Virus record (IMG/VR): IMGVR_UViG_3300042319_002138
Coordinates: 124,001 to 188,000 of that record
Direction: 5' to 3' (one strand)
Length of the DNA: 64,000 nt
In this document: one piece after another, positions 35,334-54,607 of the stretch
Layout of the letters: each line of letters opens with the position of its first letter
Position numbering within the stretch: the first letter of the stretch is position 1
Position numbers and translations under genes: made by a program
The notes under the pieces: model-generated
What the model was told of the DNA's origin: nothing
The model's database searches: none
What the model saw: only the letters and a program-made list of their open reading frames with translations

Positions 35334-35356
35334 TATCTTTGTTGGTATATATTTAT
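35334..35356 (+). promoter_or_regulatory. tandem promoter elements TATCTTTG and ATATTTAT
   Basis: Host-type element at 35334-35341 and late-type element at 35349-35356, upstream of ATG 35371. Confidence 0.5.
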
Positions 35357-36496: not shown

Positions 36497-37312
36497 ATGG
36501 TATCATACAAACGTTACATTGACACAACAGAGGACTCTATTTCTAACTATTTAAAAGAGGTTAGAAAGATTGATTTGGTAACACCCGAAGAAGAGTTGGA
36601 GTTAGCTAAAAAAATTGCTGAGGGGGACAAAAGGGCATTAGATAAATTGGTTAAAGCTAATCTTAGATTTGTTATCTCAATAGCTAAAGAATATCAAGGA
36701 CAAGGGATTCCTTTGGTAGATTTGATTTCTGAAGGTAACTACGGATTGATAAAAGCTGCAGGTAAATTTGACCATACAAGAGGTTTTAGGTTTATTTCTT
36801 ATGCTGTTTGGTGGGTTAAGCAATCGATTCTACAATCTTTGTGTGAAAATTCAAGAACAGTAAGACTTCCTGTTAATATCACAAACCAGTTATCAAAAAT
36901 TAAAAAAGAGATTGCTGTCTTCGAACAAGAAAATCAAAGAATGCCAATCAACGGTGAGATGGATTTATCTGTACTAAATCACCCTACATGTACTTCATTG
37001 AATGATAAAATAAATGAAGAAGGTGATGAGATTATGGACTTAATTCCTGATTTAACATTTGCTAGACCTGACGAGGACACTATGTCTGATGAAATCTTAA
37101 AAAACGAATTGGAAAAAACTTTATCAATTTTAAGTGATAGAGAAAGAAAAATTGTTGACATGTATTTTGGTGTTGATGGTGGTGCTTTAACTCTTGAACA
37201 AATTGGTGATGAGTTTGGTCTTACAAAAGAACGTATTCGTCAGATTAAAGAAAAGGCTTTAAGAAAGTTGAAGAATAATAGTGAAAATCTTTTTGAATTT
37301 GTACAAAAGTAA
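36497..37312 (+). CDS. RNA polymerase sigma-70 factor (RpoD/SigA-like, no region 1.1)
   Basis: YLKEV, ANLRFVISIAKEY, DLISEGNYGLIKAA, FISYAVWW, RTVRLP and LTLEQIG..GLTKERIRQI. Confidence 0.95.
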   Translation: MVSYKRYIDTTEDSISNYLKEVRKIDLVTPEEELELAKKIAEGDKRALDKLVKANLRFVISIAKEYQGQGIPLVDLISEGNYGLIKAAGKFDHTRGFRFISYAVWWVKQSILQSLCENSRTVRLPVNITNQLSKIKKEIAVFEQENQRMPINGEMDLSVLNHPTCTSLNDKINEEGDEIMDLIPDLTFARPDEDTMSDEILKNELEKTLSILSDRERKIVDMYFGVDGGALTLEQIGDEFGLTKERIRQIKEKALRKLKNNSENLFEFVQK

Positions 37313-38037
37313 TGAAAATAGTTGTTTTTACAGGGGCAGGAGTTTCTAAGGAATCAGGTATTGATACATTCAGAGATGCTGGTGGTACATGGGAAAATGA
37401 AGATGTTGAAGCTGTTGCCACACCTGAAGGTTGGAGAAAAGACAGAGAAAGAGTATTGGATTTTTACAACAAAAGAAGGCAACAGTTACTTGGTGTCGAA
37501 CCCAATGAGGCACATAAACTTATTGCTGAATTAGAAAAAGAACATGAGGTAACCGTTATCACACAAAATGTAGATAATTTACATGAACGTGGGGGTTCTA
37601 CAAACATCTTACATTTACATGGTGAGTTAACTAAAGCACAGAGTAGTTTAAACCATAAGAAAGTTATTGATGTTGGTTATAAACCAACTAATATTGGTGA
37701 CAAACATGAAGACGGTTCACAATTAAGACCACACATTGTTTGGTTTAATGAGTACCCCAATAATATAAATGAATCTGTAATAGCTCTTAGAAATTGTGAT
37801 GTTTTATTAGTTATTGGCACCACATTATTTATAAGTTATACACTTGGTCTATTGAGGTCTTGTAAAGATTTACATAACCCTAATATGGGGGTGATAGACG
37901 TTGTTTGCATCGACCCCAACCCTCCTAAAGGTGAACTAGATGGTATGTTTAGAGATGTTAATTATATTGAAAAACCTGCCACTGAGGGTATGAAAGAATT
38001 TATTGAAAATTATTTGCCTAAATTTATTGCTAATTAA
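37312..38037 (+). CDS. cobB: NAD-dependent deacylase, sirtuin (CobB-like)
   Basis: FTGAGVSKESGIDTFRD, ITQNVDNLHE, LHGEL, RPHIVWF and IGT. Confidence 0.9.
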   Translation: MKIVVFTGAGVSKESGIDTFRDAGGTWENEDVEAVATPEGWRKDRERVLDFYNKRRQQLLGVEPNEAHKLIAELEKEHEVTVITQNVDNLHERGGSTNILHLHGELTKAQSSLNHKKVIDVGYKPTNIGDKHEDGSQLRPHIVWFNEYPNNINESVIALRNCDVLLVIGTTLFISYTLGLLRSCKDLHNPNMGVIDVVCIDPNPPKGELDGMFRDVNYIEKPATEGMKEFIENYLPKFIAN

Positions 38038-38048
38038 AATAATACCCT

Positions 38049-38056
38049 TATATTTG
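38049..38056 (+). promoter_or_regulatory. Bacteroidota-type -7 element
   Basis: TATATTTG with no credible ORF before the next terminator. Confidence 0.55.
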
Positions 38057-38060
38057 TATT

Positions 38061-38142
38061 ATAGATAAGGAAATAAATTAAATGTTCTTATTGTCAGAAT
38101 ACATTAAGAACAGCCACGGTCAGAACACCGTGGTTTTTTTTT
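38061..38142 (+). ncRNA. candidate small RNA with two hairpins carrying CAGAA(T/C) loops
   Basis: TGTTCTTA(38083-90)/TAAGAACA(38105-12) with loop CAGAAT. GCCACGGT/ACCGTGGT with loop CAGAAC plus a T-tract, which doubles as the terminator. Confidence 0.5.
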
Positions 38143-38195
38143 GCATAAAATTTTTTTTATACTTTATTCTTGCATATTTATTAATAAAAAAGTAA

Positions 38196-38618
38196 ATGAG
38201 TGTAAAGTATATTATCGACAACGCCGACAGTTTATTATCAGAACAAATAATAACGGGTGATTTATTAGTGACTAACATAATATCAGGAGCAACCTTTTAT
38301 GGTGATGGTTCTGGTTTAATTGGTGTTAGTGGTTCTTTTACTGGTGGTACTGTAACAGGACCTACTGAGTTTACAAGTGGTTTATCAGCTGACACAATTT
38401 ACGCCAATTATTTTATTGGGGACGGTTCTCAGTTAGCTGGGGTAGTTGGTCTTACTTATACCGATTTAGGGTTTACAGTAACATCACCGGCACCCTCAAC
38501 TATAAATCAAAATGTAGTTTTACCTTATAATTCAACAGTAACTTATCCAACACCTTTAACAGTTGACCCAGGTTTTTCTGTTACAGTACCATCTGGAACA
38601 ACATTATCAGTAATCTAA
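38196..38618 (+). CDS. tail-fibre-like/decoration protein
   Basis: FYGDGSGL and FIGDGSQL repeats typical of fibre shafts. Preceded by ATATTTAT at 38174. Confidence 0.55.
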   Translation: MSVKYIIDNADSLLSEQIITGDLLVTNIISGATFYGDGSGLIGVSGSFTGGTVTGPTEFTSGLSADTIYANYFIGDGSQLAGVVGLTYTDLGFTVTSPAPSTINQNVVLPYNSTVTYPTPLTVDPGFSVTVPSGTTLSVI

Positions 38619-38663
38619 TATATAAAATAATAATAAAATAATAATAAAATAAAAAAAAACAAA

Positions 38664-39410
38664 ATGAGTCAAATTAATGTAAATACAATAAATTCAGCTG
38701 GAGACCCAAGTATATCAATAAGTGTTCCGTTTAGATATTCATCATCAGTAGCTACAGGTGGTAGTTCTTCAGCTATAGGAAGTTCTGTTACAGCAACAGG
38801 TTCTGGTTCACATGCTGAAGGATGGCAAACTTTAGCTTCAGGAAATTTTGGTTCACATGCTGAGGGGTATCAAACTTCAGCAACAACACAATCATCACAC
38901 ACTGAGGGTTCACAAACTTTAGCTTCAGGAAATAACGCACACGCTGAAGGGGAACAAACTATAGCTTCTGGTGCTTCTTCACACGCTGAAGGGGAGGATA
39001 GTGTAGCTTCAGGTACTTCTTCACACGCTGAAGGTAAAACTACAATAGCATCGGGAAATTATTCACATTCACAAGGATACCAAACAACAGCGGGAGGTGA
39101 TTACTCACACGCGAGTGGTTCTGCTACTATTGCTAGTAATACATCTTCATTTATTCATTGTAATTCTGGTACTGTTGATGCTATTGCTGGAGCCGTTTTG
39201 GGTGGTACAAGTAATATTTTAACTAATACAGCTACAAATAGTGCTATTATAGGTGGTAATAATATTACAGGGTCAACATCAAACACAGTTTATGTACCAG
39301 AACTAGAAGTGACATCAGTTGGTTTTGGTATAATATTACAATCTTCTAATGGTACTAGATATAGAGTAACAGTATCGAATGGTGGTGCATTGACTGTAAC
39401 AGCAGCATAA
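38664..39410 (+). CDS. fibre protein with YadA-head-like beta-roll repeats
   Basis: About eight 14-aa repeats SHAEG..T.ASG.., and C-terminal ILQSSNGTRYRVTVSNGGAL. Confidence 0.7.
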   Translation: MSQINVNTINSAGDPSISISVPFRYSSSVATGGSSSAIGSSVTATGSGSHAEGWQTLASGNFGSHAEGYQTSATTQSSHTEGSQTLASGNNAHAEGEQTIASGASSHAEGEDSVASGTSSHAEGKTTIASGNYSHSQGYQTTAGGDYSHASGSATIASNTSSFIHCNSGTVDAIAGAVLGGTSNILTNTATNSAIIGGNNITGSTSNTVYVPELEVTSVGFGIILQSSNGTRYRVTVSNGGALTVTAA

Positions 39411-39433
39411 AATTTATTAATAAAAAGAAAATT

Positions 39434-39925
39434 ATGTCTACACAATACATTATTAATAATAACGACGGTCTATTATCTGGACAAACAATTAGTGGAGATT
39501 TAACGGTAACTAATTCTTTATCAGCCACAACATATTATGGTGATGGTTCTGGTTTAAGTAACATAGGAGTTAGCCAACCTTATAAAGTTTATACGGCTTT
39601 ATTAAATCAGGGTGGTGTTGGTATTGCTCCGACAGCTAGGGTATTAGAGAATACTTTAGGTGTTATAACTTGGGAGTATATCGATGCAGGTATATATTAT
39701 GGGACATTAACTAGTGCTTTTACACCTTCTAGTAGTGCTTTTACTTATGACAAAACAGTTGTGTTTGTACAAAGGTATCTATCTCTTTCTGCCGCAGGAG
39801 GTGGTAAAGATGTTGTTGCGTATAGGGGCAGTGATGAGAGTATTACTGTTGTAACAATGGACAATGTTGATTACATTAATAATGTTTTATATGAACAAGG
39901 AATAGAAATAAGGTTGTATGATTAA
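39434..39925 (+). CDS. fibre-like protein, paralog of the 38196 N-terminus
   Basis: MSTQYIINNNDGLLSGQTISGDL..YYGDGSGL vs MSVKYIIDNADSLLSEQIITGDL..FYGDGSGL. Confidence 0.6.
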   Translation: MSTQYIINNNDGLLSGQTISGDLTVTNSLSATTYYGDGSGLSNIGVSQPYKVYTALLNQGGVGIAPTARVLENTLGVITWEYIDAGIYYGTLTSAFTPSSSAFTYDKTVVFVQRYLSLSAAGGGKDVVAYRGSDESITVVTMDNVDYINNVLYEQGIEIRLYD

Positions 39926-39930
39926 AATAT

Positions 39931-39963
39931 AAAAAAACCACAATTAATGTTGTGGTTTTTTTT
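39931..39963. terminator. bidirectional intrinsic terminator
   Basis: A-tract, ACCACAA/TTGTGGT stem, T-tract, between convergent genes. Confidence 0.75.
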
Positions 39964-39964
39964 A

Positions 39965-40360
39965 TTATGGAACAAATATTTGTAATTGTCCAGCACTTAC
40001 AGTAAAATCAGGTTTTTTCATCACGGTGATTGTGACCAGATTCCAATGATTTGTTTCTAATTTTTCAGGATTAATAATAACATTTAAATTATCACCACCT
40101 TCTCTTGAAACTATAAATCTTCTATTAGGTCTTATTTCATTATCTATAATACTATAAATTATTTCATCTTTAGCATCCTCAAGTAGGTTAATAATGTCAT
40201 AATCATATATTTTTTCACCACTCCCGTGTCTCCATTTTCTTTGTGCTGTATGACCACCTGTATCATGATATAAGTCAAAAGTAAAAGTAATTTCACTACT
40301 TAACTCATGAAATTTTTCTTCCCTTAAGATAGTTTCTTTTATTAAAGATTTAATATTCAT
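39965..40360 (-). CDS. putative head-internal protein
   Basis: N-terminal IKSLIKETILREE motif. Late-type motif 5 nt upstream on the - strand. Confidence 0.6.
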   Translation of the reverse strand: MNIKSLIKETILREEKFHELSSEITFTFDLYHDTGGHTAQRKWRHGSGEKIYDYDIINLLEDAKDEIIYSIIDNEIRPNRRFIVSREGGDNLNVIINPEKLETNHWNLVTITVMKKPDFTVSAGQLQIFVP

Positions 40361-40364
40361 ATTT

Positions 40365-40378
40365 TATAAATATTTATA
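40365..40378. promoter_or_regulatory. palindromic divergent late promoter TATAAATATTTATA
   Basis: Perfect 14-bp palindrome containing ATATTTAT on both strands, between divergent genes. Confidence 0.55.
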
Positions 40379-46161: not shown

Positions 46162-46186
46162 AGATATTTATAATAAAAACATAGAC

Positions 46187-47906: not shown

Positions 47907-47976
47907 TTTATTAAACCCCATCTTTATATAGTTAGGGTTTTTTTTATGTCTAAGAATATTTATAAATAAAAACATT

Positions 47977-54584: not shown

Positions 54585-54607
54585 AGGATATTTATAATAA
54601 AACTTTA

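Follow-up and report, generated by a model that had tools for sequence, protein, structure and literature searches.

The window analyzed here is a 64-kb stretch of a 95.6-kb IMG/VR virus record with a CheckV completeness of 29%, which suggests a large phage. The few DNA matches of the window among phage records are to Flavobacterium phages and to uncultured huge phages. The host has not been identified and is inferred to be a member of the Bacteroidota from the promoter type and these nearest phage matches. The element under study lies in a 158-nt gap between a Sir2-family gene and a 140-aa ORF that starts a short run of tail-fiber-like genes, and the following features were assigned in and around this gap.

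36497 to 37312, plus strand: phage sigma-70 factor gene (271 aa), the conserved upstream anchor of the element.
37312 to 38037, plus strand: Sir2-family gene ("cobB"), a lineage-specific insertion between the sigma gene and the predicted sRNA, whose mRNA would also end at hairpin 2.
38027 to 38056, plus strand: host-type (Bacteroidota sigma-A) promoter, with a -33 TTG at 38027-38029, a 19-nt spacer, and TATATTTG at 38049-38056, followed by a 27-nt A/T-rich stretch.
38061 to 38142, plus strand: predicted small RNA of about 80 nt, with a 23-nt leader, two hairpins, and a U-tract.
38084 to 38111, plus strand: hairpin 1, with 11 stem positions including one T.T mismatch, a variable and covarying outer stem, a small internal loop, and the tip GTCAGAATAC at 38093-38102; two unpaired bases follow.
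38114 to 38133, plus strand: hairpin 2, the terminator stem CCACGGU/ACCGUGG with seven perfect pairs and the tip GTCAGAACAC (in RNA, GUCAGAACAC) at 38119-38128.
38134 to 38142, plus strand: T9 (U9) tract of the intrinsic terminator.
38196 to 39925, plus strand: three inserted genes (140, 248, and 163 aa; tail-fiber-like, with a YadA-head repeat), of which the first is the 140-aa ORF at 38196-38618.
39931 to 39962, no strand assigned: bidirectional terminator between the inserted genes and the 131-aa gene, with a stem (CCACAA/TTGTGG) that resembles hairpin 2 but has no tip.
39965 to 40360, minus strand: 131-aa gene, a putative RelE/RegB-like (BECR-fold) endoribonuclease.

The sigma factor was assigned from Pfam regions 1.2, 2, and 4 and a PHROG sigma factor match, and the Sir2 gene from Pfam SIR2 (E = 4.5e-37). 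A sequence-only reading of this DNA had described a candidate sRNA of about 80 nt with two hairpins of different stems but the same loop and closing pairs, preceded by a host-type promoter element and followed by a terminator, and our analysis confirmed that description. Folding of 38038-38150 with ViennaRNA returned exactly these two hairpins (minimum free energy of -26.7 kcal/mol, z = -4.46), and 0 of 200 shuffled sequences folded as well. Hairpin 2 and its T-run were listed by a terminator scan and meet the definition of an intrinsic (Rho-independent) terminator, a GC-rich hairpin (7 to 9 pairs, 5 of them G-C) followed directly by a U-tract, although this covers only part of the element. 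In Flavobacterium the sigma-A -7 box TAnnTTTG spans -12 to -5 (PMC9723704), which places the predicted start at about 38061, as the sequence-only reading had guessed. That reading had named a transcript from this position as a test of its proposal; RNA-seq data were not examined, so the start site is inferred rather than observed, as are the transcript, its ends, and its abundance. The only ORF across the element encodes 37 aa (38082-38195), but its ATG is absent in many relatives, and an ORF of 25 or more codons crosses the element in only 15 of 40.

No Rfam 15 family matched the window at gathering thresholds. The best subthreshold hits, MicC (26 bits against a threshold of 90) and PsrR1 (24.7 against 42), aligned only the terminator, and five related loci also gave no match. 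A tRNA and tmRNA scan found none. The exact 10-mer GTCAGAAYAC occurs only twice in the 64-kb window, both times in this element. Within the window alone the shared loops could be chance, and it is their conservation in relatives that makes them more than chance.

To find relatives, IMG/VR was scanned for two GTCAGAAYAC words 8 to 30 nt apart. Besides tandem-repeat noise, this returned 14 distinct loci with the same architecture of hairpin, two bases, hairpin, and T-run. A stricter pattern applied to metagenome contigs raised this to 40 distinct elements from freshwater and marine samples, including a TARA scaffold. A covariance model (R1) built for the element scored 88.5 bits in the window and found one copy in the 95.6-kb record. 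In a covariance-model-based alignment of 42 sequences, 89.4% of cells were paired and 10 of 18 pairs showed double changes, while none of 500 shuffles reached any of the five measures and slid controls paired only 29 to 62%. Eight of the 11 pairs of hairpin 1 showed double compensatory changes. Hairpin 2 was 100% paired, with G-C to A-U double changes at column pair 40/51 in 15 sequences, and switched between CCACGG/CCGTGG, CCACAG/CTGTGG, and CCATAG/CTATGG. The same 10-nt tip, GUCAGAAUAC, was carried on at least five unrelated hairpin 1 stems: GTTCTT../..AAGAAC, TAATTAATT/AATTAATTA, TTTTGGT/ATCAAAA, TTAATTTTAAT/ATTAAATTAA, and, in one variant, CCCCTC/GGGGAG. A T-run followed hairpin 2 in all members.

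Because the pattern searches required the tips, tip invariance in those sets is partly ascertainment, and we therefore also used unbiased anchors. Among 66 distinct phage sigma genes, the element followed the gene in two deeply separated sigma clades, but patchily. Three close sister sigma loci without the element (L208, L209, and L215) kept a terminator with a similar CCAC../..GTGG stem (CCACGG/CGTGG or CCGTGG in L209 and L215, CCACA/TGTGG in L208) but with unrelated loops and no hairpin 1. Some decay of the tip was also seen from these anchors, in loci L206, L280, and L305. This indicates that the tip is not needed for termination and decays when the rest of the element is lost. Loss of the loops in relatives was the outcome that the sequence-only reading had said in advance would reduce the element to the cobB terminator; the loops were instead conserved while the stems covaried, so that the element is not merely the Sir2/cobB terminator. 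Sir2 was likewise rejected as the anchor, since divergent Sir2 loci lack the element and most relatives have the sigma gene directly upstream.

As evidence that the element is not a host RNA, it was absent from 151 Flavobacteriaceae genomes searched with the covariance model, where the one weak hit was a plain terminator, and from 401 searched by pattern, where the one hit was a chance match; the 12-mer tip occurred at chance level in three genomes. A pattern scan of genome contigs of all species returned at least 120 stretches, and none of these 120 had the two-hairpin architecture. Those that kept any short flanking stem were tandem repeats or chance matches, and as the scan was partial, it says little about bacteria at large, and absence from bacteria in general is not established. 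Among cultured phages (INPHARED), no DNA match to the element was found, the best hit of the sigma factor was at 43%, and the only hit of the 131-aa protein was an uncultured 484-kb phage at 31%, so that there is no cultured model.

The genomic context of the element provided the main lead to its function, through two neighbors that the sequence-only reading did not see, the phage sigma factor upstream and the 131-aa gene 1.8 kb downstream. In the sigma context, the order is the sigma gene, sometimes one extra gene (Sir2 here, a 130-aa gene elsewhere), and then the element, and the sigma gene lay upstream in every sigma-context locus with enough flank. In 30 of 37 such loci the 131-aa gene follows on the opposite strand and converges on the element, and in 24 of the 30 loci that carry both, its stop codon lies in or next to the U-tract. 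In the window, the three inserted genes, which are absent from most relatives, separate the two, and five other lineages have similar insertions; in the window and these lineages 1 to 1.9 kb of other genes lie between the two. A second context is a 98-aa ORF, the element, and a DUF932 gene (five loci), and a third is a ThyA/HNH phage.

The 131-aa protein travels with the tip. All 14 distinct close homologs found by protein-anchored searches carried it: 13 matched R1 strongly, and L305 had a one-tip variant found by eye. A larger protein search gave 483 relatives, all unnamed, of which three at 43 to 47% identity were examined. In two of these (L385 and L390) the gene follows the sigma gene on the same strand, so that the cassette is inverted, and in the third (L388) it lies near a DUF932 gene. 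In all three, the strand opposite the gene carries a TTG-N19-TAnnTTTG promoter and a predicted RNA of about 130 nt with a covarying hairpin with loop CAGAUA and a terminator hairpin whose tip is again GGUCAGAAUACU, abutting the stop codon of the protein gene. Shorter homologs at 27 to 36% identity had no tip nearby. Thus, the pair of protein gene and convergent tip-bearing sRNA is kept through an inversion relative to the sigma gene and in an unrelated neighborhood, in every full-length homolog examined (43 to 100% identity).

A sharper correlation was found for the sRNA promoter. A TTG-N18-20-TAnnTTTG promoter lies 14 to 27 nt before hairpin 1 in 27 of 40 distinct elements, and it is present in 27 of 27 twin-tip loci that have the 131-aa gene and in 0 of 13 that lack it, even though the promoter and the gene lie on opposite sides of the hairpins. 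The sRNA and the gene are physically adjacent in most loci, so that their co-occurrence is partly simple linkage and shared descent and the counts are not independent trials. On the sigma tree the state lacking both gene and promoter arises in at least three places. The converse does not hold, as 13 twin-tip elements lack the gene nearby, one of them in a 229-kb record estimated to be 76% complete, and the tip therefore has some value without a cis-encoded partner.

No Pfam, PHROG, NCBIfam, or PADLOC family matched the 131-aa protein of the window. PADLOC, NCBIfam, and PHROG searches with the 98-aa and 130-aa proteins also returned nothing, nor did an ESM Atlas search with the 98-aa protein. 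Alignments showed invariant H37, R41, R44, H45, R81, F82, and N93 and a near-invariant TVMKK motif at 112-116 in which only M114 is strictly invariant. AlphaFold2 models, predicting a soluble alpha/beta fold, reached pLDDT values of 81 and 84.7. Foldseek against PDB placed T4 RegB first (E = 0.12), followed by HigB and YoeB/ParE. Structural alignment (VIA-align) over 48,161 chains gave a CdiA-CT RNase toxin at Z = 5.2 and then HigB2, RegB, RelE, BrnT, YoeB, YafQ, ParE, and a colicin-type RNase domain at Z = 3 to 4, and the second model matched RelE, ParE, HigB, and RegB at Z = 3.9 to 4.0. The Z values of about 4 and the PDB E value of 0.12 are below the level at which such a match is considered reliable, so that the BECR fold is suggested by the recurrence of the same proteins among the top matches but is not settled by these scores, and RNase activity is unproven. 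In BFVD the protein matched a Tenacibaculum phage protein (E = 1.7e-6) and a T4-type "site-specific RNA endonuclease," which is the usual label for RegB (E = 6e-3, probability of 0.99). DUF4258 (PF14076), listed among the BECR-fold RelE/ParE-superfamily toxins (PMC11980606), was the nearest Pfam signal both by language-model (ESM) features (0.79) and by profile search, where one distant member of an alignment matched at E = 0.0011, short of significance. A PDB profile hit to GGGP synthase was judged spurious. The gene is monocistronic on its strand, with no antitoxin-like protein gene beside it. Each line of evidence is weak and all point the same way, and we therefore call the protein a candidate RelE/RegB-like endoribonuclease, not a demonstrated one.

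On the basis of these results, we propose that the locus is a gene for an sRNA of about 80 nt, read from a host-type sigma-A promoter and ending at an intrinsic terminator, that belongs to an undescribed family in uncultured, mostly large, Bacteroidota-type phages. The family is defined by one or two hairpins capped with the tip GUCAGAAUAC (two closing pairs plus a CAGAAY hexaloop), a U-tract terminator, and phage origin, and the element in the window has these features. In this view the sRNA is one half of a two-gene cassette whose other half is the convergent 131-aa gene. Complementarity between a cis-encoded antisense pair is automatic and cannot explain why ten bases stay fixed while the stems and the protein diverge; a trans factor that reads the tip is needed, and the coinherited protein is the simplest candidate. 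The tips would be its binding or pseudosubstrate sites, and the sRNA, made from the start of infection by host RNA polymerase, would bind the enzyme as a decoy, two tips per RNA, and so restrain or time it as an RNA antitoxin would. The 131-aa gene, like ten other genes in the window, is instead preceded by ATATTTAT 5 to 24 nt before its ATG, which may be a phage-sigma promoter and would place the protein later than the RNA, although this ordering is inference. In most relatives the sRNA would also overlap the 3' end of the enzyme's mRNA as an antisense RNA, which may add control but cannot be essential, because the overlap is absent here and in five other lineages with intact tips.

We give this reading as a whole a probability of about 0.5. 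The structure, the conservation of the tip and of the promoter, and the linkage are shown by the sequences, whereas transcription, RNase activity, binding, and the direction of the effect are inferences from them. We consider it very likely that the sRNA family is real and somewhat more likely than not that it is functionally coupled to the 131-aa gene, whereas a neutralizing or decoy role specifically is tentative and less likely than not. Nothing here tells binding from cleavage or inhibition from activation. The interpretation offered by the sequence-only reading, which compared the repeated loops with protein-titrating RNAs such as CsrB/RsmZ and inferred a sponge or antitoxin-mimic role, was borne out in part: the element looks like an independent short transcription unit, and the antitoxin-like guess gained unexpected support from the tight linkage to a RelE/RegB-like gene, but a CsrB/RsmZ-type RNA is not supported because the loops carry no GGA motif.

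Of the alternatives, the best surviving, though unlikely, is a trans-acting base-pairing sRNA whose exposed CAGAAY loops act as seeds for host or phage mRNAs or kiss the anticodon loop of tRNA-Gln (CAG is a Gln codon), with the 131-aa gene irrelevant. Twin identical loops on stable stems are good kissing seeds, a host-type promoter implies early expression, the element persists without the 131-aa gene in 13 loci, and the loop UCAGAA could pair with a UUCUGA anticodon loop. However, complementary sites were not enriched in the window (7 hits against 5.3 expected), and no conserved complementary site was found in or before the 131-aa mRNA. The one Flavobacterium tRNA-Gln examined has the loop UUUUGGU, which allows only five pairs, one of them G.U, and no CUG isoacceptor was found by pattern. 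A same-sense 20/21 similarity between the sRNA leader and the 131-aa coding region was seen only in the closest relatives and was treated as chance or recent. This alternative also does not explain why the sRNA promoter is present only where the 131-aa gene is present.

Less likely is a type I toxin-antitoxin-like cis-antisense regulator, in which the two transcripts converge on a shared bidirectional terminator, their 3' overlap controls the stability of the 131-aa mRNA, and the tip is conserved as a fast-pairing loop. Overlap is implied in the 24 loci in which the stop codon lies in or next to the U-tract, and the same tail-to-tail layout holds in three contexts. In the window and five other lineages, however, other genes separate the two, the 3' flank of the protein gene has no tip complement, and the tips are still intact; the terminator beside the protein gene in the window gave only a weak R1 hit (24 bits). 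Duplex folding of the long RNAs was uninformative, and the overlap criterion, fulfilled in some lineages and not in others, speaks neither clearly for nor against this class. Automatic complementarity also cannot explain a 10-nt sequence staying invariant across 43 to 100% protein identity.

Two further readings are improbable: a mere terminator or 3'-UTR stabilizer of the upstream gene (Sir2 or sigma) with neutral inherited loops, which fits the textbook terminator and the 13 loci where the element lacks its own promoter and directly follows a stop codon but not the retention of tips on at least five unrelated stems and in three gene contexts, the plain terminators of relatives, the covariation of a hairpin 1 not needed for termination, or the L385-type loci in which the RNA lies opposite the sigma gene with its own promoter; and, least likely, a DNA-level protein-binding or recombination site, for example for inversion of the cassette, which fits two direct 10-bp repeats 26 bp apart and the one inverted lineage but not the compensatory stem changes (pointing to a folded single strand), the one-tip variants, the single copy per genome, or the promoter and U-tract conserved on one strand.

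In logic the proposed system works most like a type III antitoxin or a protein sponge. Like ToxI of ToxIN and phage pseudo-ToxI mimics, it would be a structured RNA with a repeated protein-recognition unit, genetically coupled to an endoribonuclease gene that has no protein antitoxin, and orphan copies on phages are conceivable as mimics. Unlike ToxI, only the 10-nt tips repeat and not whole tandem units of 34 to 36 nt, the RNA is convergent with the protein gene in all contexts rather than upstream on the same strand, and the protein looks RelE/RegB-like, not ToxN/AbiQ-like; binding and processing of the RNA by the protein were not assayed. Type I pairs with 3' overlap (par RNA I/RNA II of pAD1; txpA/RatA) share convergent transcription, a shared terminator hairpin, and a short antisense RNA with its own constitutive-type promoter, but the putative toxin here is a 131-aa protein predicted to be soluble, not a small hydrophobic peptide, and the overlap is lost in the window's lineage while the tips are kept. 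T4 RegB and the RelE/ParE-superfamily toxins, including DUF4258, are the best structural matches of the 131-aa protein, which is small and phage encoded with invariant His and Arg residues and, like RegB, stands alone without a protein antitoxin; similarity is weak, no partner sRNA is known for RegB or RelE, and specificity and ribosome dependence were not determined. CsrB/RsmZ-type RNAs also present the same loop motif on several hairpins, which suggests titration of a protein, but here the loops are CAGAAU and CAGAAC, there are two sites rather than many, the element is phage borne, and no CsrA-type partner was identified, CsrA not having been searched for. 3'-UTR-derived sRNAs of the MicL/DapZ type likewise share the terminator of the upstream mRNA (sigma or Sir2 here) and have their own promoter just after the stop codon, but no Hfq or ProQ is known in Bacteroidota, and the function proposed here is protein binding, not seed pairing. 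A lambda-type late leader or put-type antiterminator RNA would lie upstream of and co-oriented with the operon that is read through, which was not observed, since in most relatives the next gene is convergent and in the window the next gene has its own ATATTTAT motif. Nothing in the literature that we searched, a limited collection, pointed to a prior description, and we regard the element as a new sRNA family and possibly as an RNA-controlled toxin-like module that differs from type III and type I systems in the respects listed above.

A bolder possibility, which we consider unlikely but which the data leave standing, is a new kind of toxin-antitoxin-like module in which a RelE/RegB-fold endoribonuclease would be held in check not by a protein but by a small RNA displaying the enzyme's recognition motif on invariant hairpin tips. 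Large Bacteroidota phages would use it to time mRNA shutoff, and orphan copies would act as decoys against related RNases from competitors or hosts.

Almost nothing is known about regulatory RNAs of Bacteroidota phages, and because Bacteroidota also lack Hfq, ProQ, and Shine-Dalgarno-based control, their RNA biology is poorly charted. The element described here is a compact, clearly delimited sRNA family with a sequence-invariant structural motif and an obvious candidate protein partner, which makes it directly testable. If the RNA restrains a RelE/RegB-like RNase, RNA antitoxins would extend to the largest superfamily of toxin-antitoxin ribonucleases, and this would also give a mechanism for timing phage-driven mRNA decay. 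If it does not, it is still a new phage sRNA family with strong covariation support, suitable for Rfam.

The phage encodes its own sigma-70-family factor with regions 1.2, 2, and 4, and a Sir2-family gene follows it immediately, such that the sigma stop and the Sir2 start overlap. Sir2 is found at this position only in the nearest relatives of the window. The features of the window considered here are as follows.

36497-37312 (+), gene for the sigma-70-family factor
37312-38037 (+), Sir2-family gene
38056-38076 (+), 5' leader of the predicted small RNA (sRNA) with the twin hairpin tips
38664-39410 (+), gene for a 248-aa protein
39931-39962, bidirectional terminator between the inserted tail-fibre-like genes and the 131-aa gene
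40132-40152 (-), 21-nt stretch inside the coding sequence of the 131-aa gene, the proposed partner of the sRNA

The 21-nt stretch inside the 131-aa coding sequence is a same-sense 20/21 copy of the 5' leader of the sRNA (E value of 6e-4 within the record). It is seen in the window and in the related locus L055, weakly in the related locus L066, and not in distant members. The bidirectional terminator at 39931-39962 has the stem CCACAA/TTGTGG and looks like a tip-less copy of hairpin 2, the terminator hairpin of the sRNA, perhaps left by the insertion that split the cassette. The 248-aa protein has a near-threshold hit to the YadA-head repeat and matches a PHROG of unknown function, while Flavobacterium phage records annotate the homologous DNA as tail spike protein.

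In a second gene context, represented by loci L381, L062, L065, L051, and L377, the twin-tip element has no promoter of its own. It begins inside the stop codon region of a conserved 98-aa ORF of unknown function and is followed by a DUF932 gene. The tips stay intact down to 56% identity of the 98-aa protein, including a C-G for U-A swap next to the tip.

Another conserved, structured-looking element sits in the same neighborhood in related loci, at about 843 to 1000 in L212, at about 3780 to 3930 in L272, and upstream of the 131-aa gene, on the opposite strand, in L063. It begins AATGGGTYGAACCGAGAYTACCCA, continues with ACTCGGCGG, and ends in a terminator. No Rfam family matched this element.

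A search of BFVD with the model of the 131-aa protein also matched part of a 575-aa protein from an uncultured phage (A0A6J5SZS4) that is annotated as “RNA polymerase sigma-70 like domain,” which hints at a sigma-RNase-like fusion somewhere. In the window, the motif ATATTTAT lies 5 to 24 nt upstream of the ATG of 10 ORFs and 60 nt upstream of that of an eleventh. Examples of its positions are as follows.

38174-38181 (+)
40366-40373 (-)
35349-35356
46164-46171
47956-47963
54588-54595

The motif recurs before genes downstream of sigma in many related loci. It is a candidate phage-specific promoter or leader signal, distinct from the host-type TAnnTTTG.
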